64,000 nucleotides of DNA from Adineta vaga (GCA_021613535.1 CP075494.1:3720001-3784000); one strand, 5' to 3'; shown: positions 930-21,008, numbered from the stretch's first letter. Notes: a model not told the origin generated them from the sequence alone. Numbers and translations are program-made.

Positions 930-1336
930 AACCTACGTTATATCCGCGGATTAGAGACGATTTTGTTTTCTAAAATTCAATTGAAAATATAAAAGACCTT
1001 AGACTCTACCCAATATAGAACAATGGCGAACGTATCGAAGAAGTACAAGTGCGTCCGAATGATAATCTAGAATTGAAATAATTCGTTCAATGATTATTTC
1101 TCGACGCTTGTGTTAACTTTGATTTTTCGGTGACCAAAATTTATTGTGATCTTCAATAAATTCATTTTTTGTATATCTTTCAATTATAATGATCGATGTA
1201 AAAAAATATATGTGAATGAAACTGAATTTAACCATATGCTGTTTTATCTTGAATATATTAATAACCTTGAAGCAGTATGCCATTGCATACATCATTTCTC
1301 GTACTTTTAACAAAATATATTAAGAAAAGAAATACG

Positions 1337-3502
1337 ATGATAACAACTCTTCTAGGTCGATTGATGATATTTTTATTGTTCATCAATGAGAATTCGATTG
1401 ATTCAATAGACATTAATCCATCATTGTCGACTGAGTTGTATGTTGTTCCATTTCGAATCTTTCTCAACGATAAAGCAGATGGTTCTATTAATCATCCTTA
1501 TCCATCAATTCAACAAGCACTTGATCATATTGAACGAAATTATCATCATCATGATTATTATGATAGCAAGACAAAGTATCGAATCACAATTCATTTATAT
1601 CCAACTTATCATTTTGTTCAAACAACAATCCGATTACATAAAATCCACAGTCATATGCGATTAACAACGATGAATGATGAAATCACTTCTCTCTATGAAG
1701 AGTTACGAACTTCTAATCCTAATGACTATCATCGATTATCACGTGCTAGCATCAGTGGTGGTATACCAATAACTGATTGGACATCAGCCGGTGATAATAT
1801 ATACAAAGCTACTATTTCACAACCCATCTTTGTCAATCAATTATTTATCAACAATCAACGTATTATTCGTACACGTCTTCCAATGAATCAATCAGAATAT
1901 TTTCAATATGCTGCACCATTACAAGATCCCAATGAAGCTCGATATGGTTTTCAATATGCACGAGGACAATTTGAAGCTTGGCCATTAGATGATGCTATGG
2001 TTGTTGTTTATCATAGTTGGACAACATCACATCATTATATTGATAGAATAGATACAACTAATCAAACAATTTTCTTTACAAATCCATCGAATTCACCCAT
2101 TGGAACATATGTTATTCAAGGACAACGACGATTTCATGTTGAAAATCTTTGTATTTCATTTGTACCAAACTCATTTTGTTTTGTTAATTCAACTAAAACA
2201 ATTTATTTAATGACCGATGGAACATATGATCCAACACAAGTACAAGTAATCACACCAATACAAGAATTCGTCGTTGTTCTTGCTGGTGATGTGAATAATC
2301 CTGTTACAGATATTCTTATTGATAATGTTGTCATAGAACATAGCGCATGGAATATTGATCGATCTGAACAAGCAGATTATCAAGCAGCATCATTTCTAAC
2401 TTATGCATCCGTTTATATTGCAAATGCAACATCAATTCTACTTTCAAATATTGAAATTAATCATAGTGGTTCCTATGGTATTTGGATTAGAGAAGGAACA
2501 ACAAATATCAATCTAATCAATTCGTTGATTACTGATACAGGTGCAGGTGGAGTTCGTATTGGTCAAATGATCACACCTGTAATCATCCCAACGAGTTCAA
2601 TACATATTCTATCCAATGAAATAAGTTATGGTGGAAATGTATTTCCAAGTGGTGTTGGACTTCTTATTCATCGTGCATTTGATGTTATTGCTTCTGATAA
2701 TATTATTCATCATCAACGATATACCGGTCTTTCAGTTGGATGGGAGTGGGGTTATAATCCATCTTATACAAATAATATATTAATTCATGGAAATTATATT
2801 TATAATACGGGAGAACATATTCTTTGTGATCAAGGTGGAATTTATACACTTGGTATTCAACCAGGTACCATGATAACGAATAATGTAATCAAAAATGTGT
2901 TTAGCTATGCTGCTTATATGTGGGGAATTTATTTAGATGAAGGTTCATCGCATATTATTGTTTCAAATAATGTTGTGTATAATATTGGTTGGGCTGGTTT
3001 ATTTCAACATTATGGTGCAAATAATACAATCATCAACAATGTATTTGCACGTACATCATTAATTTCACCGCCACAACCTGATGATCCAATTCCTGATGGT
3101 GATCTTCGTATAATGTCAACTGAAAATCATCTTTCATGGACATTTACACGTAATATTGTTTATGATACATATCAAGGCACTAATCACTCAATGTTTAAAT
3201 CTGATTATCCAAATGTATCTGTATCTTTTAATAATAATATTTATTTTAATCCATATAAAACTTCATTATTATTTGGAATTGAACAAACATCATTTGAAGA
3301 ATGGCAAAACTCGGGACAGGACAATAATAGTTCGATAGCAGATCCATTATTTCTTGGTGATGTTAATCAATGTGATTTTTTTACCATACAAGCAAATAGT
3401 CCAGCAGCTCAACTTGGATTTAAAAATATAACAAAACTTGCAAAATGGACACCAGGATGTCAAATAGATGATACCCACAAGAATCAATTTTATCATTGGT
3501 AA
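1337..3502 (+). CDS. Secreted right-handed parallel beta-helix glycoside hydrolase (GH141-like), bacterial-type, intronless
   Basis: Hydrophobic N-terminus from MITTLL (ATG 1337; ORF open from 1277). Motifs ISGG, QLFIN..R.IRTR.P, VYHSW, DQGGIYTLG and GIYLDEGSS, plus many N-x-I beta-helix rungs. Confidence 0.8.
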   Translation: MITTLLGRLMIFLLFINENSIDSIDINPSLSTELYVVPFRIFLNDKADGSINHPYPSIQQALDHIERNYHHHDYYDSKTKYRITIHLYPTYHFVQTTIRLHKIHSHMRLTTMNDEITSLYEELRTSNPNDYHRLSRASISGGIPITDWTSAGDNIYKATISQPIFVNQLFINNQRIIRTRLPMNQSEYFQYAAPLQDPNEARYGFQYARGQFEAWPLDDAMVVVYHSWTTSHHYIDRIDTTNQTIFFTNPSNSPIGTYVIQGQRRFHVENLCISFVPNSFCFVNSTKTIYLMTDGTYDPTQVQVITPIQEFVVVLAGDVNNPVTDILIDNVVIEHSAWNIDRSEQADYQAASFLTYASVYIANATSILLSNIEINHSGSYGIWIREGTTNINLINSLITDTGAGGVRIGQMITPVIIPTSSIHILSNEISYGGNVFPSGVGLLIHRAFDVIASDNIIHHQRYTGLSVGWEWGYNPSYTNNILIHGNYIYNTGEHILCDQGGIYTLGIQPGTMITNNVIKNVFSYAAYMWGIYLDEGSSHIIVSNNVVYNIGWAGLFQHYGANNTIINNVFARTSLISPPQPDDPIPDGDLRIMSTENHLSWTFTRNIVYDTYQGTNHSMFKSDYPNVSVSFNNNIYFNPYKTSLLFGIEQTSFEEWQNSGQDNNSSIADPLFLGDVNQCDFFTIQANSPAAQLGFKNITKLAKWTPGCQIDDTHKNQFYHW

Positions 3503-4056
3503 AACCACATGAATGTTTATCTTTTGCTTTTTCAAATAAATGTTTAGACTAGTTAAGAACTTGTATTCACAATCGATGATTGTTTTTTCTTTATAACTAT
3601 AGTTGTAATTTGACTGAATAGAAAAAACTCCTTAGAATAAGAGTGTCATTAAAGATGTGAGTGTATATATTAAGTATGTTTTATATATTCACCCTCATTG
3701 CCTATGATATATAGTTCACTTACCTTGCAAGATTAAAAAACAGGTATGTACAATATTAGAATTCGTCATCCATATCATAAGGGTGTGGGTGTGGCTGGAT
3801 CCGATCATATATTCTCATTTATATATACCTTCACTTCAATCTCACCCACACCCACCCTTACTCCTCAAGAATCACCATGAAAGAATCGTTCAAAGAAGCT
3901 CACAATAAAGACAATTCGTGAGATCAATATAAAAATATGTTCAAAAAACGGTTATATAACTTCAAAATCGTGAACTCCTTTTTATTAAATAAACAATAAA
4001 ATATGAAAGCAAATAGGTTTTTATTCGTATACTAAACTAAATTATATTATATGTAA

Positions 4057-7000
4057 TCAAACTGATGCTGAACATTCAAGATATTTTGGATTAAATGATT
4101 CAAATGGATATTTTCTTGTTTTATTTCGTTGATCAATATCTTTCGATAAGTTTCTTAATTGATGTTTGAAATTTTCATAATTCTTTAAATTTTTCTCATA
4201 ATATTGATTATGTTTAATTAAATGATTCCAATCTTCTAATAAACCAGGCATACGTACACCAGTAACAACAGTCAAAATAAGTAATTGTGTATAAGTTTGA
4301 ATATTTTGAATTTCTTTTCCATCTTGTAATTTTGTTCCAATAAATCTTGGATCAATGACATAATCACTCATTTGTCCAACATGTTCATGCATACCTGTAC
4401 TAACCGCAATTAAATGTGATAAAACATCAATAAAACGTTTTAATGATATAATACCTGGTATTCCAAGTTGTTTACATAATTTATCAATAAATTCTATAAT
4501 ATATGAATCTATCGGTAATTTATCATCATCAATATCTTCTTGTATATTATAAGTTATATAAAAGAAATTCTTAACATATTCGTGTATAATTTTCCAAAAG
4601 TTTTCAATATCAAAATAAATTGGATAGACTTTATCCCATTCATCTCTACTTTTCTCATTTTCTTCAGGAGACATTGTTGGCGAAATAAATTCAGGTAATA
4701 AACGAAATTTATAATTCATTGATATATAATCACATACTTTTAAAAATTCATCATAATCAAATGCCCATACTCGATGAACTAAACCATTTCGATTAACTAA
4801 TGACATCGCAGCTTGATAATTAACTGAAACACTATGATATGTAAATGGTTTTAAAAATAATCTTAATGGATGATCAATTGGTAAACATTTTCGTGTCGCA
4901 GTTACAAATGTATTACATTCAATCATATGTGTAACAATCAAATGATCACATATAGTTATATATGCAAAGAATGATGAACGCCAAACATATTTTACATGTT
5001 CCCAAAATTGATCATTTTTTTCAATTAATCGATTAGCATGACACCAATAAATCGCAATTAATTGAAAATCTTTATCAAAATATGCTGCCGCTCCATAACG
5101 TTCAAATGGTTTTCGAACACGAAAGATCGATAAAACAGTCATATCATTAACATAAACAGCATTATTTAAAACTTTCTGTTCCGATGTTCCAATACGTTGA
5201 GTATAATGACATGCACAACCGAAAAATGCTAATCGACTCATTGCTTCATCGGAAAACAATTCCGTATAAACAATATTTGGTAAAGGTACGGAAGGAAAAA
5301 TTTTCGTACGCCATGCAAGTGCTTGTTCTAATGTATCAAATTCAGCTGAACAATCATAAAAATCCCATAGTTTACTGTTAACTAACCAACGAGCAAATTT
5401 TCTTAATGGTCCTGCACCATTTGATTTATCTTCATCCCATAATGGAATAAATTTCGCCATATCAATACGAAATATATCGAAATTCTCTGAAGGTAAATAC
5501 AATGGTAGAGTTATATCAATAGCACGTAATGGAAATAAATTTGATTCTTTAATAACCATTTTCATTAATAATCTGACTATTTTTGTGTAAGTATCTAAGA
5601 CTTTCCAACAATGATTTTCTTCTATTGGATTTAATTGTCGAATTTTTGCACTGAATAAAACCATATCTTGTTCATTTTTATTATTTGTTTGTTGAAATTG
5701 ATTATTATCTTCATCAGTTTCGTTAATAATCGGTAAAAACCGTTCAGCAATATATTGAATAATATCAAGAGATAAATCATGTCCTGGACAATAGCGTACT
5801 GGTCGTTTATTTCTATCTGGATTGATAATATCTTCTTCAACACCATTCCATACAAGTATTTTATTTAAATCTGAACGATCTGGTAGAAATTCATCAGGAT
5901 TTTGAAATATGGTTTTATCACGATTTGCACTAACAAGTGAACAATGAATTGGTGTATTTTCTGGTATTTTTATGTGATGATGATTTTGATTTTGAAAAGA
6001 TTTTTCAATTTCATTCACAATTTCATTTGTTGCTAAGATATTCACTGTTGGTACAACTTTATCCAGTCGTGCACATTCTTTTATAAAATTGTGCGGATTT
6101 TTTTTAAATAAACGAACATTCTTTTCCTTATCCGCCCATAATCGATCAATAACAGTAACTGCTAATTTAGCTGGTGCCGGACTGCCTGCTATACAAAATA
6201 CAACGGTAATAAATTTTAAAACTTCTTCACGAGATTTTTTCTTATCAGCTGCCATAAAAGCCGCTTGTAAAGCTGCTCCATTTTCATACCGTGAAAATGC
6301 TTGAAGAAGAGTATAATAACTACGTAAATTTTTTCGTTCAAAATAATGACCATTGAATAAGAAATTCAACCAATTAGGAAAAAATATGAATGGATTTTTT
6401 ACGCAATCAATAAAAGCTAATCGTTCATTTTTGGTTAATTCTCCATTTGTTCCTAAGAAAAACAAGACTTCTCCTACAGCTTGAAAAACTAACTCTTTTG
6501 TTGGCTTTTCATCCATATGACGTGGAACAATTCGTGATAATTGAAGTTCAATTTCAAAAGTTCGATTTTGTAAATTATGTGGAAAAGCATGTAACCATTT
6601 GAATATAATCTTACGACCTAATTCCATATCTGGATCATCGGTTGAAAGAAATATTGTTGTAAAATTACAGAATGTTTTCAATGATTGTGAAATATCCCAA
6701 GCTAATAATTCATAATCTTTACGTGGTGGAATATCTTGAATATATCGTTTAACTAATTCATAGGAATTAACAGCAATACCATTACCGAAAACAAAATAAG
6801 GAACATGATAAATTTTACGAAAATATTCTTCTAATGATAGAAATAAATGAACAGGCTGTAAATAATTTGTTATATATTCAATTATTGTTGCAAATTGTAA
6901 AAGATAAGATTTGAAATACCATGTAAAATTTCTTTTATCTACTGTTGTTTGAATTAATGTTAATCTCATACTTGCTGTTAGATGACGAACAGATATTGTT

Positions 7001-7725
7001 GATGATGGATCTTTATAAATCATTTGACAATAGATTCTCAAACCAATATAAGCAGGTACAACAATAATGAATAGAGTTATTAATCCAATGATACCAAGTA
7101 GAAAATAATATATCGTACTTATTGGTTCGGGTAATTTGTCACCGAATCGAACTACATGTGGAGCAAATATTTGATTGACGTGAGAATTTTCACTGAAACT
7201 AGCACTATTTTTTATACGACATTGAACTTTAGTTCGATATTCTTTCAAAAATGAATACTTTGCTATGATATAGCATAGAAAACCGAATGGTGCTGCTATA
7301 TAAGTGATTAAGACGATAATAGTAAAAATAAATCTTTCAGATGTCCATGATTTATTTATATGATATGTACCACATGATGTATTTTTATCATTGCAAGTGA
7401 AAGTGTGTCCTGTATAGAAATCAGATACCATCCATTGAGCAATCCATAGATCCATTAGATAAAAATGATTTCTTGTAATCATAATCATAAACAGATCTTT
7501 TAATGATGTGTTCCAAGTTAGTAAATGAAAAAAACTGAATTGTGAATTATTTGTATCTCGAACAAATAACATTAAAGTATATTCAATTGATAAGAATAAA
7601 GTGGGTAAGAAAATGAAATATTTGGAAATTTTATTCAATGGTGCAAATATTAATGCAAACCATCCTATTTTGATAATATTATCCAAATTGATTGCATTGT
7701 CGGATGTCCAGATGTTGAATAGCAT
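4057..7725 (-). CDS. Fusion protein: ABA4/DUF4281-like membrane domain + CYP74-like cytochrome P450 + lipoxygenase
   Basis: N-terminus GWFALIFAP...HFYLMDLW...APFGFLCY. P450 motifs KECAR (ExxR), ANRD..F.NPDEFLPDR and WNG...RYCPG (Cys646). LOX motifs DHLIVTH, LPIDHPLRLFLKPF, TGMHEHVG and terminal LECSASV. One uninterrupted ORF. Confidence 0.85.
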   Translation of the reverse strand: MLFNIWTSDNAINLDNIIKIGWFALIFAPLNKISKYFIFLPTLFLSIEYTLMLFVRDTNNSQFSFFHLLTWNTSLKDLFMIMITRNHFYLMDLWIAQWMVSDFYTGHTFTCNDKNTSCGTYHINKSWTSERFIFTIIVLITYIAAPFGFLCYIIAKYSFLKEYRTKVQCRIKNSASFSENSHVNQIFAPHVVRFGDKLPEPISTIYYFLLGIIGLITLFIIVVPAYIGLRIYCQMIYKDPSSTISVRHLTASMRLTLIQTTVDKRNFTWYFKSYLLQFATIIEYITNYLQPVHLFLSLEEYFRKIYHVPYFVFGNGIAVNSYELVKRYIQDIPPRKDYELLAWDISQSLKTFCNFTTIFLSTDDPDMELGRKIIFKWLHAFPHNLQNRTFEIELQLSRIVPRHMDEKPTKELVFQAVGEVLFFLGTNGELTKNERLAFIDCVKNPFIFFPNWLNFLFNGHYFERKNLRSYYTLLQAFSRYENGAALQAAFMAADKKKSREEVLKFITVVFCIAGSPAPAKLAVTVIDRLWADKEKNVRLFKKNPHNFIKECARLDKVVPTVNILATNEIVNEIEKSFQNQNHHHIKIPENTPIHCSLVSANRDKTIFQNPDEFLPDRSDLNKILVWNGVEEDIINPDRNKRPVRYCPGHDLSLDIIQYIAERFLPIINETDEDNNQFQQTNNKNEQDMVLFSAKIRQLNPIEENHCWKVLDTYTKIVRLLMKMVIKESNLFPLRAIDITLPLYLPSENFDIFRIDMAKFIPLWDEDKSNGAGPLRKFARWLVNSKLWDFYDCSAEFDTLEQALAWRTKIFPSVPLPNIVYTELFSDEAMSRLAFFGCACHYTQRIGTSEQKVLNNAVYVNDMTVLSIFRVRKPFERYGAAAYFDKDFQLIAIYWCHANRLIEKNDQFWEHVKYVWRSSFFAYITICDHLIVTHMIECNTFVTATRKCLPIDHPLRLFLKPFTYHSVSVNYQAAMSLVNRNGLVHRVWAFDYDEFLKVCDYISMNYKFRLLPEFISPTMSPEENEKSRDEWDKVYPIYFDIENFWKIIHEYVKNFFYITYNIQEDIDDDKLPIDSYIIEFIDKLCKQLGIPGIISLKRFIDVLSHLIAVSTGMHEHVGQMSDYVIDPRFIGTKLQDGKEIQNIQTYTQLLILTVVTGVRMPGLLEDWNHLIKHNQYYEKNLKNYENFKHQLRNLSKDIDQRNKTRKYPFESFNPKYLECSASV

Positions 7726-8442
7726 TGCAGAGAAGAACTTTTATATTTGCGTATTCTGTCCGAAAATGTTGAGAAACAACTGAACAATAAATATGTGTTT
7801 TCGACATTTAATCTTTTATTGTTTTATATATATGGTTTCAACTCGTAAATAATCAACATAGACTGAGAGAAAAAAGATAGATAAAATTGTCTATTAACTT
7901 ATTTCATAATAAACTACATTCATTTTTTTTGCATTCAACATATAGTATCTATAAGAATATCATAAAAATTTCGCTTATATATGGTTCGATATTTGATATA
8001 AATACCGTACTGTATTTTTATATTGTCGTTTTATAAGCAGCTAGTAAAGACGGTAGATCCGTCTGGCAAGTGAATACTTTCTAGTATATGATGATTATAC
8101 AACGTATTATAAAAAGAAAAATCATGTCTAAAAGATTGTGTTTATTGCCATCCCCTAGTATAAGATAAGTTTATGGATAGAGAAAGGACGTTTTATTTCG
8201 CATTATATTATTTTTATTTTGTTTTCTTCAGTTCGTTTTTTATCTAGTCGAAATCTTCGATGTATATACTTCTTATGCTGGAAAGTGCACACCCTAATAA
8301 TAGTACTCATCAGTATCGAATTTGGATTATTCAAATGAATAATATACGAATTGTTCACTTTGCAGGGACTGAGAAGTAGTGGAATATTTTTTATGCAATA
8401 AATGAATGTTTCGTAGTCAGCACTATAGGCTCACAGTTCTGT

Positions 8443-10976: not shown

Positions 10977-13900
10977 ATGATGATTGGGAATGATCAATTC
11001 TGGATTGAAATTCTTCGTGATTATAATGTCGATCAAATGCTTTCATTACCTTATGATCGAAAACACATTTCTGTGAAGAGTCGTTCTAATCAAGTATGGT
11101 CAACTACATTCAATTTCGATTTAAAATTATTACAAATATTTCGACAGTGTACAACAAAACTAAAAACAACACTTGAAAACTTAATTTTTACGATCTATTA
11201 CATTTTTCTATTTAAAATCACAAATGATGATACAGACTTCTGGATTGGACGAAATTTTACCGATAAATATGATCATAGAATTCCATTTTATCTACGTGTT
11301 GATCCTCATTTGACGTTTATTGAACTTCTCAATCGCGTAACTAAAATGTCAACACGCACCAAACAACATGCACATGTTCCACTACTGATCAAATCAACTT
11401 TGTTTCCTATAGTTTTTAATTTCCACACTGTCAATTGTGATACCATAGAACCAAGCATATTTGATCTTTGTTTAACAGCTATTTACAGCGAAGAATCGAA
11501 TAATTTGCAATGCCAGATCAATGGATCATCTGATATATTTGATCATATCACATTACAAAAATTATCACAACGATTTCATCTTCTCTGTCAACAATTATTC
11601 ATTTCTTCTTTTGATCTTCATACACAACCCATCTATCAACTATCTATCATCTTACCCGATGAACAACGACTGCTCCAACAGATCCATAATATAGATACAA
11701 CCATATCAAACGATACATCGATCACAATTCCTCAACTGTTTAGTCAACAAGCTATGAAATATCCTCACAAGATCGCTGTTACATTAGATCAAGCATCGCT
11801 CACCTATTCTGAATTATTCCATCGAGCGAAACAATTATCTTTCACTCTTATTGATAGTTACAATGTTCAATCAGGTGATATCATCTGTCAATGTATTGAG
11901 CGAAGTATCGAAATGATCATTGGCATTTTGGCAATCATGATGTCAGGTGGAATCTATGTTCCATTGAATCCATCTGATTCATCTCAACGATTAGATTCAC
12001 TCATTCAACAAATCAAACCAAAATTAATACTGACACATCATCGATCAGCTTCTTCGTCTCTTTCACACAAACCTGGCATTTCCTCAGTTAATATTAATGA
12101 GATTATCAATCGTAACAACGAATGCGAAGAACTGCCTCCTGTCTCAATAACAGGAGAATCCATCTCAAATATAATTTTCACATCAGGATCAACTGGTGTT
12201 CCAAAAGGTGTTCAGATTCGTCATCGAAATTTCGTTTCTTATATGAAAACACAATGCTTTGATGATAGAGATACTATTCTTCAATTGGCAAGTTGTTCAT
12301 TCGATGTTCATTTAGATGAGATTCTTTGTTCCCTTTGTCTTGGTGGAAATCTTGTTTTACTTCGAGAAAATGGTCATCTTGATTTTGATTATATAACAAA
12401 GGTCATAGTTGATCAACATGTCACATTTATAGCACCAGTTCCCTCATGGATTGATGCATTATGTCAATATCTTCGAGCAAATACAGAGGCAAATGAAAGA
12501 ATGAGATCGATTCGATGGTGGTTCATTGGTGGTGAACAATTACTAAGCTCAACAATTCAACAACTGTTACCATTTGTTGATTCAGAATGTCATCTATTGA
12601 ATTCATATGGACCTGCTGAAATAACTGAAGCAGCAACATGTTATGAAATATGTCGTGATGATCTTAATGAAATGATAACGATCCCAATCGGTCAACCATT
12701 GAAAGGTTATCATATCTATTTAGTGGATGAATATCGACAAGAAGTGATACCAAATCAACAAGGTGAAATTATGATTGGAGGTGTTGGTGTGTTTGGTGGA
12801 TATTATCAGCGAGAAGATTTAACAGAAGAAGTACTAGTTGAGATGAATGGAGAAATGTTATAAGACCGGTGATTATTCGAATCGATGCGAAAAGTGGTGA
12901 TTTAATGTTTGTTGGAAGAAAAGATTTTCAAGTGAAACTTCGAGGACAACGCATTGAACTTGGTCATATCGAACATACTATAATAAAGTTTTCAACATCC
13001 ATATCGAACTGTATCGTGATAAAATATGTTTATCATGAACAGGAGCATCTTGTTGCTTACGTTGAAACACCATCAAATACGATCAAAGAGGAAGATTTAC
13101 ACGAGAAATGTTTATCAAATTTATCATCATATATGATTCCATCACTGTTTATTATTTTAGAGAAGTTTCCACTTTCATCGAATGGTAAAATCGATCGTAA
13201 GTCTTTGCCTTCACCTGACTTTAATTCATTGAGTAAAACGATAAATGAAGATATTGAATCAATGACTCCGATGGAAGTACGTGTACACCGATTATGGTGT
13301 GAAGTTTTGGATATGAAACAAATTTCTACGAAAAGACCTTTCTTCTCTCTTCATGGTACATCGTTATTATTTATGAAACTTTACAGTTTATATCAAATAG
13401 AATTTGGTATTGCTCCTCATATTGTAACCTGTTTACAACAAGCAACTATCAGTGAACATGCTCAACTTTTGACATTAGCTATTAATTCAAGTACCGGTTT
13501 ACATTATCAATCCTGGACTTGTTTGCACGTTGATCATGGTAAAATAAATGAATATTGTATATTGATTGATATGCTATAACTCTGTCATTTTAGCGAAAGT
13601 TTCATTTGCACAATCACGAATATTTCTGGATGAACAAATACGATTTCAGTCCTGGAATGAAGAGATGATTGCAATTTATAATCTTCCTCTTCTATGTCGT
13701 TTGTCGAAATCTTCTCTCTCAATCGAAGATCTTCGACAAACTCTTCGACAAATCACTGCAAAACATGCTATTCTACGTACATGCGTACGGCTAGATCCTA
13801 AAACTGGACATTTGTCACAATATATTCAACCCAATGATATCCAAGATTGGTTTAGTTTTGAAATAAGTATCATCGATGACAATAATGAATTGAAAACAAT

Positions 13901-16900
13901 TTTTAATCATGAAGTAATCAATCGAAAGCTTTTTGATATTGCTTTTGGTCGAGTTTTTCGATGTCATATTGTGCGTCAACGTTCATCCGTTGTCAATGCT
14001 ACCGACTTATTGTCGACAGATGATTGGATTATTTTTAATTTTCATCATATCGCCTTTGATGGAGAATCAGAACGAATCTTTCTTGACGATTTTCAACAAT
14101 TGTACAATCACAAACATCAAAAACAAGATAACGATAAACTACTGCAATATATTGATTGTAAGTAATAACTATAATCTATCTTATAGACAGCATATCTTTA
14201 GTCAGAAAATGGATTTGAATTTGTAAATTCTCGAGTAAAATTAGTTAAAACTATATAACGTGAAGATCTATTGTTTTATAGATTCCATTCATGAGCAACA
14301 TATTGATATGACAGCAGCTAAAATGTATTGGCGTCGAATTTTTAAAGATTATGAATTTAAAAAAACAACGATCTTGCCAGTCAATCGAAATTTTTCTTCA
14401 AACAGTATTTCCACTGGTGAAGGACTAAGTATTGAGATATATCTGACTGATCATATCGTTGAACGACTTATTACATATGCTTCAAGTGCCAATACTACTC
14501 TTTATCAAGTCTGTCTGACAATCTATTATGTCTTTCTATACAAACTATCTGGTGGTCGACGTGATATTCTAATTGGTATTGTACAGGCGAATCGGTATCG
14601 TCCAGAACTTCGACATATTATTGGCATGTTTGTGAATACATTACCGTTACTTATTCACATTGATCCATACGATACATTCGAACAAGTACTTTCTAAAGTA
14701 AAAACGATGATCTTCGAATCCCAACCTCATTCTAATTTACCATATCAGTCTATTATTGAACAATTACCTACGAAACGACTTAATCAATGTAATATAATTC
14801 AAACGATGTTTACTTTGGATGAATATCAAACAACAAAATCAACGTCTCAATTGAATCGTACATCTATTATTGAGCCTTATTCTATACATTATTTAGATGA
14901 GAATCTTGCTCAGATTGGAATTCCAACAAATGCACCTGCTATGTTTGATATAGAATTGTCTATGGAATATCTGACCAAGACATATTCCTTACGAACAAAT
15001 CTGTCTGTTTCAAACGAGCTTTGCGATTCATCAACACTGATCAAAATGGCTCGACAATTTCAGTTAGTTGTTGAACAATTTTCTCCGTCGACATCAATTT
15101 GTGATTTATCAATAATATTACCCGAAGAAGTAATACAACATGAACCAAAAACGATAACTAATTCCTTGACAGGTAATTTCAATCAGGTATCATTTATTTA
15201 TCAAATTACAGATGGATTTCTTTCTCTTGATCGTCTTCGACATGCTGTTCAGCTTGTTACTCTCAAACATAATTTAGTTGAAGTAGATACAGTTGATGTC
15301 TTATGTAATCCTTTACATCCTAATAGTTCCAATGGATATCAACAGAAAAATAACAATACAAATCTTCTTGAAAAGAGTGATACTATAGTTTTCAAATTTC
15401 ATCAGAGTGTATTGGATATTTTACCAATGAAAGTATTTTATCAAGAACTTTCTAAAGCATATGAATATGAAACAGCATTGATTAATAGCAATACAGCTGG
15501 TTATCATTTTGGGATGAGATTATGTTTGATTATCAATGGAAACGTTTATTCGATTTGGCAAGTGAAAAACATATTGGTGATACACTTACTGTCAGCTCTA
15601 CGTTTAATAGTGACCTAACAAACGCAATTCTGACTTATGTTTCAACAACAAATAGCTCTTCAATGGACTTATTCCTCGCAATTTATTATATATTTCTGTT
15701 TAAACTTGTCTTCAATCAAACCGATTTATGTGTTGGAATGCCTATCGATAATTTACATAAACTTGATCTGTAAGTTTATTTCTCATCTCATCTATCCATA
15801 AACGATATCATTCTATTATATAGCCTACCACTTCGGCTTCAACTTTATCCATCCGAAAACTTTGAATGTTGTCTGCAACGAGTAACTAAACTTTGTCAGA
15901 AGAGTTTATACTATGCTCACCATATTCATCGAGACGTCAAATTCTCATCATCAACTTATCTCGACATAGTTTTCAATTTTAAGAACAATTCTGACGAGAA
16001 TGAAACTATAAACAAAATTCGATTTCCTACTGCACAATTACAACAAATTCGATATGTTTCTGACACCAACCAATTGTATCATCATAGTGACCCTATACCA
16101 TCGAACTTTGATCTCTGTCTAACAGCAATCCATGATAAAACAATGAATACTTTTCAATATCAATTCGAGGGATCATCTGATATATTTGATCATACCACAT
16201 TACAAAAATTATCACAACGATTTCATCTTCTCTGTCAACAATTATTCATTTCTTCTTTTGATCTTCATGCACAACCCATCTATCAACTATCTATCATCTT
16301 ACCCGATGAACAACGACTGCTCCAACAGATCCATAATATAGATACAACCATATCAAACGATACATCGATCACAATTCCTCAACTGTTTAGTCAACAAGCT
16401 ATGAAATATCCTCACAAGATCGCTGTTACATTAGATCAAGCATCGCTCACCTATTCTGAATTATTCCATCGAGTGAAACAATTATCTTTCACTCTTATTG
16501 ATAGTTACAATGTTCAATCAGGTGATATCATCTGTCAATGTATTGAGCGAAGTATCGAAATGATCATTGGCATTTTGGCAATCATGATGTCAGGTGGAAT
16601 CTATGTTCCATTGAATCCATCTGATTCATCTCAACGATTAGATTCACTCATTCAACAAATCAAACCAAAATTGATACTGACACATCATCGATCATCTTCT
16701 TCATCTCTTTCAAACAAATCTGACATTTCCTCAGTTAGCATTGATGAGATTATCAATCGTAACAACGAATGCGAAGAATTACCTTCTGTCTCAATAACAG
16801 GAGAATCCATCTCAAATATAATTTTCACATCAGGATCAACTGGTATCCCAAAAGGTGTTCAGATTCGTCATCGAAATTTTATTTCTTTTATTAAAACACA

Positions 16901-19900
16901 TTCTTACGATGATAGAGATACTATTCTTCAATTGGCAAGTTGTTCGTTTGATGTTCATTTAGATGAGATTCTTTGTTCATTATGTCTTGGTGGAAATCTT
17001 GTTTTACTTCGAGAAAATGGTCATCTTGATCTTGATTATCTGACAAAGGTCGTGGCTGATCATCATGTCACATTCATAACACCTGTTCCATCAATGATTG
17101 ATGCATTATGTCAATATCTTCGAGCAAATACACAGGCAAATGAAAGAATGAGATCGATTCGATGGTGGTTCATTGGTGGTGAACAATTATTTAGCCCAAC
17201 AGTACAACAATTGCTACCATTTATTGGTCCAGAATGCCATCTATTGAATTCATATGGACCAGCTGAAGTAACAGAGGCATCAACAATCTATGAAATATGT
17301 CGTGATGATCTTAATGAAATGATAACGATCCCAATCGGTCAACCATTGAAAGGTTATCATATCTATTTAGTGGATGAATATCGACAGGAAGTGATACCAA
17401 ATCAACAAGGTGAAATTGTGATCGGAGGTGTTGGCGTGTTTGGTGGATATTATCAGCGAGAAGATTTAACAGAAGAAGTATTGGTTGAGATGAATGGAGA
17501 GACATGTTATAAGACCGGAGATTATGGTCGAATCGATGCGAAAAGTGGTGAATTAATGTTTGTTGGAAGAAAAGATTTTCAAGTGAAACTTCGTGGACAA
17601 CGTATTGAATTATCAATGATAGAATCGGTGATTCTTCAATCATCATCGGAAATCTTGAATTGTATTGTGATTAAAGAAGATTCCTCAAATGACAGTTATT
17701 TATGTGCTTACGTGAAAACAAGAGAAAATGCAGATACAAAGCGCATTGGCGATGAATTAATGAGAATGTGTCATAATCAGTTACCTTCGTATATGATTCC
17801 TTCGAAATGGATGTGCATTACTGAGTTTCCATTGAATTCAAATGGTAAAGTTGATCGACAAAAACTATCAAATCTTTCACAAATTGTAAATTTACCATCT
17901 GTATATCAGCCAATAGTTGCACCATTATCGTGTTTAGAAAAAAAATTAGAAGATATTTTTGTACGTGCTTTTACTTTGAAGACATCACCAGATATATTAA
18001 AATCATTTGGACAATTAGGTGGAACATCGTTGGGTGCAATGCATGCATTGATCTTAATTCGACAAGAAATATATGAACAAATAGATATTAGTCTTCTCTT
18101 TGCTAATCCTTCAATACGACAATTAGCTTCAGTATTAGAACCTCTTTTAGCGAATGTAAAATCGATTGAAGTAGAAAACGAAGATGAGAAAAACTTTTCT
18201 ATTCGACCTAATTCATCATGGCTCATTGAAACACTTGGAATTATTCTACTCGCATGGCAATGGTTATGGCCATTCTATTTCACAAGTCAATCAAATATTT
18301 ATATGTTTCGCTTATTGTTCATTCCATTAATACATTTATTCCAATATCTATTATTTGTTAAACTTCTTGATGCATCATCTTTACATGGTAGTGATAGTTT
18401 ATATTCCTGGCGTTATTATCGTTTATGGTTTTTACGACGTCAATGGTCTTTAAATACATATTGGTTAGGATATCTGTTTGGTACACGATTTTATAATAGT
18501 TATCTTCGTTTCTGTGGCGCTCGTATTAGTAAAACAGCGTGTATTTATACAAGTCAGATTGATGCACCTTGGTTGATTGAAATAGGAGATTGTAGTTATA
18601 TTGGTGAAGAAGTTGTTCTTTCGTCGATGAGTTATCATGATTGCATTTATGAATTACATCAAATTCGTATCGGATCTCATTGTTCAATCGAAACAAGAAG
18701 CGTTTTACATGACAGAGTTGATATGCATGATGGAATATTTATAGCACCATTAACATCTGTTACGGGTCAAATTCTTGGAAATGATGGTGGTGATATTCAC
18801 CTTTCAAGTGAAACTGCTATTCTCAAGCATTCGATATTTCAATTATTGATGATTCTATTAATGATTTCTATACATGCATTGATTTTCGAAATAAGTTGGT
18901 ATGCAATATCTTGTATATCTATTTGTTGGTTTATTTGGTCAATCGTTGGTGCCATTATGAGTTTATTCTTTCTTCGATTTGTGGTTGGTCATGTGGAAGA
19001 AAAGTTTTCTCATCCATTAAGCTCCTGGTCATTTCTTCGTCGGTTTTGGTTACGTCATTTAGTTCTTCATTCATTTCATCCATGTTTATCGACTAGTTTT
19101 GATGGATTCAATTCGTTTACTCCATTCATTCTTCGTTGGTTAGGTGCAACAATTGAAAATAATCATATTGAAATCGCAGATTTCGTTCCACTTCTTTCCA
19201 TTCCATCCAATCTATTAACAATCAAATCGGATGTAACAACAACATCAGAGATTTGTTTTGTTCCATATGATACAACAATCGATGGTCTATGTATTGTTAC
19301 TGGTCCAATTGAAATAAATCGTCGAGTATTTCTTGGAAATAATTGTCTTCTACAATCAGGTGTTTCGATCCCTGAAGATGTTCTGATTGGTTCTTTAACA
19401 CGAATTGATTCAACAACAATGATTCTTCCAGGTGATATCCTTCTTGGTGTTCCTGCTCAATCGATGCCATTTATTTTGTCGGATGTTGATGAAACACGAA
19501 AGATTTCTAATGATTTTCCGCGAATAGTAATTGAATGTATTCATTTTATTTTACTTGATCTATGTCTTTCATTTACTGTAATGAACACGACTAGTTTTAA
19601 TCAATTTTTATTAATGGTACTAATCTGTTGGTTGATTTATTCATTTCTTCTTTATATTATCTATATGTATTACATGAATAATAACACTTCGGAATCCAAT
19701 TGGAAAATAACATTAGCAATGATATTCTATTCTCAATATACGAAATACATAGGTCGTTTTCTCGGTAGTACACAATGGCTTATCTTTATTCTTCGTCAAT
19801 TTGGTGCACAGATTGGTAATGATGTGATTATTGATGAGATGAATTCCTTATATGATGTTCATCTAATTACTATTGATGATCATGCACGCTTATCATCGAC

Positions 19901-21008
19901 ATGTCAGATACAGGTAAAGATTATTTCTTTTATTTACATTTGATCTAACTTTCTTCTTGAAATATAGTGTCATACATTTGAACATCGTCAATTAAAACTT
20001 CGTCCAGTTAAAATTGGTTCCCATTGTATTTTAAAAGATATGTCATTTGTTTTACCAGGTGTCGAATTTCTTGGTTATAATTATTTACATCCTTGTTCAC
20101 TTGCTTTACCTCATGATCAATTTAAATTACATACAGATTGGTCTGGATCACCAACAAAACGTTTGATTGTTCATTATGGAATTCAACCACCAAGATTCAT
20201 TCTTGCTAACCGACAATCATCCATAGATAACTATGTTGTTGTTGTTGCACGAACTGATGATGATATACTTATTCTTTATTTTGGAGAGAACGGATGGACA
20301 AGTTGGCAATCCGGTCTGAATTTACGACAACCCTGTCGACCAAGTTATATTTATATAAGATTATTTTTTACATCATTCTTATGCAATTCAAAACCGAAAC
20401 GTATTCTTATCGTTGGTCTTGGTGGTGGAATATGGCCTATGCTTATTCGACATTATTTTCCGACAGTTATTATTGATGTGGTTGAAATTGATCAAACAGT
20501 AATTGATTTAGCAAACGAGTTCTTTGGAATTGAAGAAGAACAAACAAAGAATAATTACTTGAATTTGATTACAGATGATGGATATCATTATGTTAAGAAA
20601 ACAGCTCATCGATATGATATGATTTTTATTGACGCATTTTTAGAAGATACAATTCCTGCTCAGATTAATAGTCAACAATTTGTTCTCAATTTACATCGAA
20701 TTTTAAATAATAATGGTTGTTTAATTACAAATGTCAATGTTCCATCAACTATTGACTTTGATCGAATTGTTCAAAGACTTACATCCGTATTTGAATCAAA
20801 CATATTATTAGCTCATACAAATACGATTGAAAATGCACGTGTGATCATTTCAGGAAATCAATCGTCTTTAACATCAATATCTTCACGAACAGAAACCATT
20901 CAACAAGCCGAACGATTCGAAATAGAAACACATTTAGAGTTTAGTTTTTCACATTTAATTTCTCTTGCATATCATGGTTTAATCAATAAGAAAATAATAG
21001 AAACTTGA
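10977..21008 (+). CDS. Multi-exon NRPS: partial C - A1 - T1 - C - degenerate C - A2 - T2 - Pls-type membrane terminal domain - SAM-binding (spermidine synthase-like) domain; frameshifts near 12853-12878 and 15500
   Basis: A motifs FTSGSTG.PKG, NSYGPAE, YKTGD, QVKLRGQRIEL and NGK.DR. T motifs LHGTSL and LGGTSL. C motif HHIAFDG. Introns 13539-13593, 14158-14281, 15770-15823 and 19914-19967 each restore the frame. SAM motif ILIVGLGGG...VVEID...DMIFIDAF. Confidence 0.9.
11523..12960 (+). repeat. Internal duplication of the NRPS A-domain region (second copy about 16170-17610)
   Basis: Long near-identical DNA at an offset of about 4647 nt. Confidence 0.9.

Follow-up and report, generated by a model that had tools for sequence, protein, structure and literature searches.

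A cytochrome P450 fused to a lipoxygenase in Adineta vaga and in protists: a candidate membrane-anchored, single-chain oxylipin synthase

We describe an intronless gene of the bdelloid rotifer Adineta vaga that encodes, in one chain, a multi-pass membrane part, a cytochrome P450 and a lipoxygenase (LOX). It lies at positions 4057-7725 of a 64,000-nucleotide stretch of genomic DNA (GCA_021613535.1, CP075494.1:3720001-3784000), which we refer to as the window and which corresponds to C5:3720001-3784000 in the 100.8-Mb, six-contig genome. We consider it reasonably probable that the gene product, a member of an uncharacterised family, is a single-chain oxylipin synthase anchored to a membrane, in which the LOX would make a fatty-acid hydroperoxide and the neighbouring P450 would convert it. 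The frame and its parts, from N- to C-terminus, are the following.

4057..7725, minus strand: whole open reading frame (ORF), 1222 amino acids (aa) plus stop, intronless, with an ATG start
7006..7725, minus strand: ABA4-like (PF14108/DUF4281) membrane part, aa 1-240, from Pfam, a hydropathy scan and a local hidden Markov model (HMM)
5656..7005, minus strand: cytochrome P450 domain, aa 241-690, from AlphaFold, Foldseek, VIA and PDB profile matches
5629..5655, minus strand: short, variable P450/LOX linker, aa 691-699, from the alignment
4060..5628, minus strand: LOX catalytic domain without PLAT, aa 700-1222, from Pfam, PDB profile matches and Foldseek

Translation of the 1222 codons revealed neither a stop nor a frameshift, and Pfam detected no flavin, ferredoxin, catalase or reductase domain on the protein. 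An earlier note, made from the DNA sequence alone, had proposed a single intronless frame with a P450 followed by a C-terminal LOX; the intact frame, Pfam and the fold matches all bear this out. The motifs quoted there were each found at the residues given and are conserved in an alignment of 20 rotifer and amoebozoan sequences (A1), which share 35-73% identity with the window protein. Invariant across A1 are E550, R553, F613, P615, R617, W626, R644, C646 and G648 on the P450 side, and H928, H933, A972, H1113, H1115 and G1117 on the LOX side. A separate set of 20 diverse members served as wide family alignment.

Three copies of the gene were found in the A. vaga genome, each of them intact, open and intronless: the window copy on C5, a copy on C1 (1236-aa open frame, 75% identical to the window protein) and a more distant copy on C6 (1337-aa open frame, 40% identical). 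Between the C5 and C1 copies, dS (synonymous divergence) is 0.36-0.66, and the ratio of nonsynonymous to synonymous divergence (dN/dS) is 0.40 in the membrane part, 0.28 in the P450 and 0.33 in the LOX; purifying selection therefore acts on all three modules. Full-length homologues in the protein databases come from Adineta ricciae, A. vaga (I4U23_004988 and I4U23_027631 among the NCBI-named proteins), A. steineri, Rotaria, Didymodactylos and metagenome contigs. They fall into two paralogue groups, with 56-73% and 36-39% identity to the window protein, and one EukProt homologue shares 35% identity. Public records name them only as 'lipoxygenase domain-containing' or 'unnamed'.

The fusion might be an artefact, whether of assembly, of contamination, of pseudogene decay or of reading across two neighbouring genes. 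In favour of this, metagenome gene callers list proteins of about 700 aa with the membrane part and the P450 but no LOX. In the two that we examined, on the rotifer-like contigs L001 and L002, a 573-aa LOX ORF in another frame starts 14-16 nucleotides (nt) after the shorter protein, and a GT..AG intron in the linker, as read from the contig DNA, restores the frame (47 nt at L001 8078-8124; about 61 nt at L002 about 8124-8184). We rejected the shorter form as a separate architecture, since both examined cases are prokaryotic gene calls split by the linker intron. The resumption of the LOX frame behind this intron indicates that the fusion has been kept through eukaryotic gene evolution. Along with the three intact copies in a chromosome-scale genome, the purifying selection and the recurrence of the architecture across five bdelloid genera and among protist records that bear transcript-type names, the intron refutes an artefactual origin, to which we assign next to no probability.

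Weak but consistent evidence points to transcription of the window gene. Contigs assembled from four putative RNA runs lie only within 3979-7076, with none in the flanks 3400-3978 and 7077-8400, and one contig (5375-5703) crosses the P450/LOX junction with no splice joint seen. At 5759-5824 of the window, a contig of one run (X2, depth 2.1) shows a joint annotated as 'goes back 66', which is probably an assembly artefact.

The fusion is shared well beyond rotifers. When 1.84 billion representative proteins were searched exhaustively by HMMER with the P450 profile, no more than 283 matched at E <= 1e-3, strikingly few for a profile of this kind. Local HMMs identified a P450 followed by a LOX in 62 of the 189 fetched proteins, always with the LOX downstream, and about half of these fusion proteins (30 of 62) also contain the ABA4-like part. 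Among fetched clade members of at least 900 aa, a downstream LOX is present in 55 of 62, and in 31 of 38 outside the close rotifer set; Pfam confirms the pairing of P450 and LOX in distant members. Named holders besides the bdelloids are Soliformovum irregulare (Amoebozoa), Acrasis kona (Heterolobosea), Bolivina argentea (Foraminifera) and the dinoflagellate Effrenium voratum. The Soliformovum record contains all three modules, is labelled a complete ORF and bears a transcript-type name, as does the Effrenium record. The order P450-then-LOX is thus the rule for this P450 clade, in rotifers and protists alike, and far from being rare the architecture marks a whole clade that spans at least four protist supergroups and the bdelloids.

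A few members of the clade deviate from this plan. The 1572-aa protein P0057 has EF-hands ahead of its ABA4-like, P450 and LOX modules, which hints at calcium control, as exerted by PLAT/C2 in other LOXs. In the 2865-aa protein P0087, from a JGI metagenome, the clade P450 has an ABC transporter (ABC_tran, E 5e-27; ABC2_membrane) as its fusion partner in place of a LOX. No LOX gene was found adjacent to the stand-alone clade P450s P0086, P0133 and P0149, whose contigs are short, one of them being without DNA.

Among named animals, only bdelloids possess the architecture. The proposal that it was a fusion enzyme 'in an animal' is correct as far as its presence in a bdelloid goes, but it does not describe an animal invention, as protists of four supergroups share it; the suggested search for the same arrangement in other rotifers and in protists was successful on both sides, with five bdelloid genera and the named protists. 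A quick, midpoint-rooted tree with long branches, which we used solely for grouping, unites both rotifer groups with Soliformovum, P0053 and P0036 in a single supported clade, and the second rotifer group lies nearer to P0036 than to the first rotifer group. The 53-kb contig that carries P0036 is eukaryotic, with a chromodomain retroelement and a guanylate cyclase. The restriction to bdelloids among named animals, the spread among protists, the intronless state and the neighbouring genes suggest that the rotifer gene was acquired horizontally from a protist. A bdelloid genome, of a kind known for gene acquisition, would thereby have gained a lipid-signalling enzyme, probably of foreign origin, and then duplicated and kept it.

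The identity of the middle domain rests on profiles and fold rather than on a single-sequence score. A check by HMMER against PF00067 and PF00305, which the earlier note had recommended, came out in part: the LOX is above its cut-off (E 4.2e-8, 32.6 bits versus 23.6, aa 903-1079), whereas the P450 remains below (E 1.1e-3, 18.3 bits versus 22.8, aa 547-618). This weak score of the window protein is made good by the profile and fold evidence. Homologues P0057, P0090, P0104 and P0123 exceed the PF00067 cut-off. A profile of aa 241-690 matched 106 distinct chains at E <= 10 among all PDB sequences, and the 60 listed are all P450s; a profile of the 20 diverse family members matched 489 chains at E <= 1. 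The AlphaFold2 model of the domain, built from a 20-sequence alignment, reached a mean predicted local distance difference test score (pLDDT) of 78.7 and a predicted template modelling score (pTM) of 0.80. With this model, Foldseek returned at least 500 matches at E <= 0.001, of which the 50 listed are all P450s, and the best VIA alignment gave Z 24.1 to 8fbc over 333 residues (root-mean-square deviation 3.4). The ExxR motif falls into the predicted K-helix (aa 544-554), and the Cys stands just ahead of the L-helix (aa 649-662). The middle domain, as modelled and as matched by profile, is thus a P450 fold, far beyond chance. Its signature elements are listed here.

6175..6189, minus strand: I-helix kink A-G-S-P-A, aa 513-517, replacing (A/G)-G-x-(D/E)-T; acid-alcohol pair absent
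6067..6078, minus strand: K-helix ExxR, E550-C-A-R553, invariant in A1 and in the wide family alignment
5875..5889, minus strand: PERF-like F-L-P-D-R, aa 613-617, aligned with the PERF of solved P450s; F613, P615 and R617 invariant in A1
5782..5850, minus strand: lengthened Cys loop, W626-N-G, 17 residues, R644-Y-C646-P-G648, from the alignment; the L-helix follows in the model

Two of these elements depart from ordinary P450s, namely the lost acid-Thr pair and the extended Cys loop, both of which had been noticed from the sequence alone. In the model, the I-helix (aa 499-531) breaks exactly at S515-P516, into helices 499-514 and 516-531. The replacement of the acid-alcohol pair is family-wide, with A-G/A-x-x-A-P kept across the wide alignment, where the heme Cys and the E and R of ExxR are also invariant; C646 is the presumed heme thiolate. 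Loop length varies widely within the family, with the flanking W/F-N-G and P-R-x-C-P-G retained. In the window protein, W626 and C646 are 20 positions apart, which amounts to 13 extra residues if W626 is taken as the canonical Phe.

These departures had led to the label 'CYP74-like', which as a statement of kinship is not supported: bacterial P450s outscore CYP74A, the profile of the Cys loop retrieves no CYP74 and the I-helix lacks a conserved Asn. To examine this kinship, we searched the PDB with four profiles, covering the whole domain, the wide family, the last third of the domain and the Cys loop by itself, and made two structure rankings; none of these put a CYP74 first. Bacterial enzymes head the matches of the wide profile (CYP107B1, 4.2e-15; XplA, 3.6e-13; CYP134A1, 6.2e-13), with P450nor (1e-9) and CYP74A (4.3e-6, about 52nd) following lower down. 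With the Cys-loop-only profile, the PDB yielded only 9xhp_A and 9xho_A (BcmD, E 0.005), another P450 and, unrelated to these, an NTF2-like protein, and no CYP74 at E <= 10. The BcmD structures have a P-R-K-C-P-G-R Cys loop after a long insertion, as in this family. Neighbours of the P450 domain in the ESM Atlas are bacterial P450 clusters.

Descent from a true, very divergent member of the CYP74 clan nevertheless deserves consideration, even though we regard it as very unlikely. The motif ahead of the Cys loop in CYP74 enzymes is W-S-N-G, which the W-N-G of the window protein recalls. AtAOS (2rcm) gives the longest structural alignment (361 residues, Z 22.0), and the profile of the last third of the domain aligns to it at E 7.5e-7 (rank 11; query 9-114 to chain 351-458), nearly gapless through the Cys loop, from which similar loop lengths follow. 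Against this, dozens of bacterial P450s lie at Z 22-24, so that the fold of CYP74 (plant allene oxide synthase (AOS), hydroperoxide lyase, divinyl ether synthase and epoxyalcohol synthase; metazoan CYP440 and CYP443; PDB 2rch, 3dam) matches as well as that of any P450 and no better. By sequence, CYP74 is not the nearest group (4e-6 versus 4e-15 for bacterial enzymes), and CYP74A stands a reported eleven orders of magnitude behind the top bacterial P450. The marks of CYP74 are a catalytic Asn (Asn321 in AtAOS) and a nine-residue Cys-loop insertion (PMC6627107). The window protein has no Asn at all in its modelled I-helix (aa 499-531), nor is there a conserved Asn column in the 20 sequences, and its insertion, at the same place in the loop, comprises 13 residues by the count of the earlier note, with W626 as the canonical Phe, in a family of varying loop length. 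CYP74 enzymes are independent of O2 and redox partners and form a clan defined by structure, mechanism and phylogeny (PMC10813956); in the papers cited here they stand alone, whereas this P450 is fused to a LOX. What the window protein shares with CYP74 in its absent acid-Thr pair and its long Cys loop is analogy only. In our reading, the P450 may act like a CYP74 enzyme without being one by descent, the likeness being convergent, as in the catalase-type AOS-LOX of corals and the dioxygenase-P450 of fungi.

The LOX domain is recognised more readily. Its profile matched only LOXs in the PDB, with Fusarium graminearum LOX (6ns2, 6e-18) as best match, followed among others by human 12-LOX (1.7e-13), rabbit 15-LOX, which was aligned to its very C-terminus, and coral LOX. 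The AlphaFold model is poor (pLDDT 57.3), and Foldseek still returned 127 matches at E <= 0.001 (best 4.1e-9), the 50 listed being all LOX. A PLAT domain was not found in the LOX part. The residues expected around the iron are the following.

4927..4944, minus strand: iron ligands H928-x4-H933 (H-LIVT-H, aa 928-933), invariant, aligned with the H-x4-H of solved LOXs
4810..4812, minus strand: A972 in VNYQAA (aa 968-973), aligned by HMMER with the Coffa-Brash Ala of 6ns2, invariant in A1
4375..4389, minus strand: H1113-E-H1115-V-G1117 with the third His ligand; Gly at +4, where Asn or His is usual, and a second His at +2
4057..4062, minus strand: C-terminal Val1222 (carboxylate iron ligand of LOXs) and stop, from the translation

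Ala at the Coffa-Brash position means S-specificity. Both this Ala (A972) and the Gly at the usual place of the fifth ligand (G1117) are as the earlier note described them. Throughout the family the third-His motif reads H-x-[H/Q]-V-G, with His or Gln at +2 in most distant members, and H1115 could substitute as a ligand if the helix is locally irregular; HMMER aligned this stretch differently to 6ns2 and to 3d3l. Of the 20 A1 sequences, 17 end in Val and three in Ile, Thr or Ala. An S-x-S-V/I ending is kept in most family members, in the form S-V-S-I/V in most distant ones. With PLAT-less and fungal LOXs (Cyanothece CspLOX2, 5med; Fusarium, 6ns2) the window LOX shares a catalytic domain without PLAT barrel, the H-x4-H, the third His and an aliphatic C-terminal carboxylate. 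It differs from them in its H-E-H-V-G as opposed to H-x3-N/H, in a conserved N-terminal extension with a W-D-E-D run and in the fusion to a P450. Strong conservation marks the first 130-200 residues of the LOX part, which have no sequence match to known LOXs and a low-confidence fold, and W-D-E-D is invariant at aa 763-766 (window position given as about 7430-7438, minus strand). This extension may form a module peculiar to the family where P450 and LOX meet.

The N-terminal part is ABA4-like. PF14108 scores E 1.6e-3 and 19.3 bits on the window protein (aa 20-152), below its cut-off of 27, and 27.8 bits, above the cut-off, in the homologue P0036; it also appears in the precomputed Pfam annotation of many close homologues. 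The hydropathy scan marked aa 36-55, 131-156 and 201-234 as strongly hydrophobic, giving at least three such segments. ABA4 (DUF4281) is a plastid membrane protein required for neoxanthin synthesis in Arabidopsis. The first 240 residues of the window protein resemble it, weakly here and above cut-off in homologues, but in this animal, which does not photosynthesise, they are joined to a pair of oxygenase domains, and the ABA4-like part may serve just as an anchor.

Taken together, these modules would form a self-contained two-step catalyst without need for a reductase. The iron of the LOX would be held by H928, H933, H1113, the carboxylate of Val1222 and perhaps H1115, and the enzyme would add O2 to a polyunsaturated fatty acid, yielding a hydroperoxide, probably of S configuration (Ala972). 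The neighbouring P450, which retains heme Cys and ExxR, could take up this hydroperoxide as both substrate and oxidant and, needing neither NADPH nor a redox partner, rearrange it as an AOS, epoxyalcohol synthase, lyase or divinyl ether synthase does. The enzyme may be kept at the lipid bilayer by its membrane part, a role played by PLAT in other LOXs. The missing O2-activation pair, the lack of a reductase domain and the remodelled proximal loop favour such a self-sufficient P450. The product would be an allene oxide, an epoxyalcohol, an aldehyde or a divinyl ether. Architecture, folds, conserved catalytic residues, selection and the persistence of the fusion are direct results of our analysis, and the chemistry is deduced from the architecture.

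Several observations weigh against this proposal. In sequence, ordinary bacterial monooxygenases come closest among the solved P450s. The family's long Cys loop has its match in BcmD (9xhp/9xho), so that the loop alone is no proof of peroxide chemistry. Monooxygenases can also lack the Thr, as does P450eryF, which is among the top fold matches of Foldseek. On the LOX side, the iron site is non-canonical, with the fifth ligand Asn, His or Ser not present at +4 and G1117 invariant in its place, and pLDDT drops below 50 around the third His (aa 1111-1164); dioxygenase activity of such a LOX is assumed. The RNA evidence is weak as well, since it comes from fragmentary contigs of low depth, in runs that are only presumed to be RNA.

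Given these points, the P450 might instead be a conventional monooxygenase that receives electrons from a separate reductase (host cytochrome P450 reductase or ferredoxin) and hydroxylates or epoxidises a fatty acid or the LOX product, with the fusion serving co-localisation only. We keep this as the foremost competing explanation, with a minor but real share of probability, because the closest solved sequences are bacterial class I enzymes of this kind (CYP107B1, 4e-15; CYP134A1; CYP150A6) and because neither a missing Thr nor a long loop proves peroxide chemistry. Such enzymes also lead the fold ranking, P450eryF works without the Thr and BcmD shares the long Cys loop. A monooxygenase is harder to reconcile with an I-helix in which acid and alcohol are both replaced (S-P-A here, x-A-P family-wide), with an insertion on the proximal, redox-partner-docking face and with the near-obligatory fusion to a hydroperoxide producer (55 of 62), which fits the logic of the known heme fusions of LOX and dioxygenase (DOX).

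Less probable, and in our view unlikely, is that one of the catalytic domains has left its textbook function, the LOX being a hydroperoxide isomerase like epidermal LOX3 or inactive, or the P450 being a heme-less structural or regulatory module. The invariant G1117, where Asn, His or Ser is usual, the low model confidence at the third-His helix and the sub-threshold Pfam score of the P450 would agree with this. However, H928, H933, H1113, the C-terminal Val, C646, R644 and E550/R553 are conserved, dN/dS is 0.28-0.33 in the two domains, and the family-wide H-x-[H/Q]-V-G suggests a working variant site and not decay. A further reading would extend the self-sufficient oxylipin synthase by one step. 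In plants, conversion of an epoxide to the allenic carotenoid neoxanthin requires ABA4. As a decidedly speculative idea, the chain might be a three-step assembly line, in which the LOX hydroperoxide passes to a convergently evolved, CYP74-independent class of self-sufficient P450 and the resulting unstable allene oxide or epoxy intermediate is processed or channelled in the bilayer by the ABA4-like domain, giving rise to a jasmonate- or prostanoid-like signal in bdelloids and many protists.

By analogy, the P450-LOX chain would join a known class of proteins, in which a fatty-acid oxygenase is fused to a hydroperoxide-converting heme enzyme. The catalase-type AOS-LOX fusion is known from corals and cyanobacteria. 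The coral enzyme (Plexaura homomalla and other octocorals; PDB 3dy5, 3fg1; PMC5617202) resembles the window protein in having an N-terminal heme domain and a C-terminal LOX in one chain and in the same order, and its heme domain consumes the hydroperoxide made by its LOX. The coral heme domain is catalase-related, however, whereas that of the window protein has a predicted P450 fold, and the coral 8R-LOX has a PLAT/C2-like domain (PMC5617202), in contrast to the Coffa Ala, the multi-pass membrane part and the absence of PLAT in the window protein. Fungal DOX-P450 enzymes (PpoA/linoleate diol synthase, 9S-DOX-AOS; PMC13049297) likewise fuse a fatty-acid oxygenase to a self-sufficient P450 that rearranges the hydroperoxide. 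Their oxygenase is a heme-containing, cyclooxygenase-like dioxygenase and not a non-heme-iron LOX, and the order is reversed, with the DOX at the N-terminus; no cyclooxygenase-like dioxygenase domain was detected among the family members scanned.

We found no description of a P450-LOX fusion or of rotifer lipoxygenases in the searchable full-text literature, many subscription journals being outside its reach; the papers retrieved deal with coral AOS-LOX, fungal DOX-P450 and the CYP74 clan of plants, algae, cnidarians and lancelets. Two papers on oxylipins in dinoflagellate symbiosis do not mention the fusion. If our reading is true, the P450-LOX chain would be a third, independent solution beside the catalase-type AOS-LOX of corals and the dioxygenase-P450 of fungi, and peroxide-using P450 chemistry would have arisen outside the CYP74 clan. 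The family offers a defined gene with which to ask which oxylipins are made by amoebae, foraminifers, dinoflagellates (including relatives of coral symbionts) and bdelloids.

The genomic surroundings of the gene look enriched in acquired genes. Adjoining it, at 1277-3502 on the plus strand of the window, lies an intronless 741-aa ORF that encodes a right-handed beta-helix (PF13229, E 7e-14) and appears foreign; beta-helix proteins of this type are common in bacteria and fungi. At 3 kb from the gene, nonribosomal peptide synthetase pieces (AMP-binding, E 9e-70; condensation, E 9e-36) are located at 10977-15618 and 16074-19943, both on the plus strand. The upstream neighbour of the orthologue on contig L001 (1469-5710) encodes 1413 aa, in which an ADP-ribosylating-toxin-like domain (PF03496) is accompanied by numerous TPR repeats.

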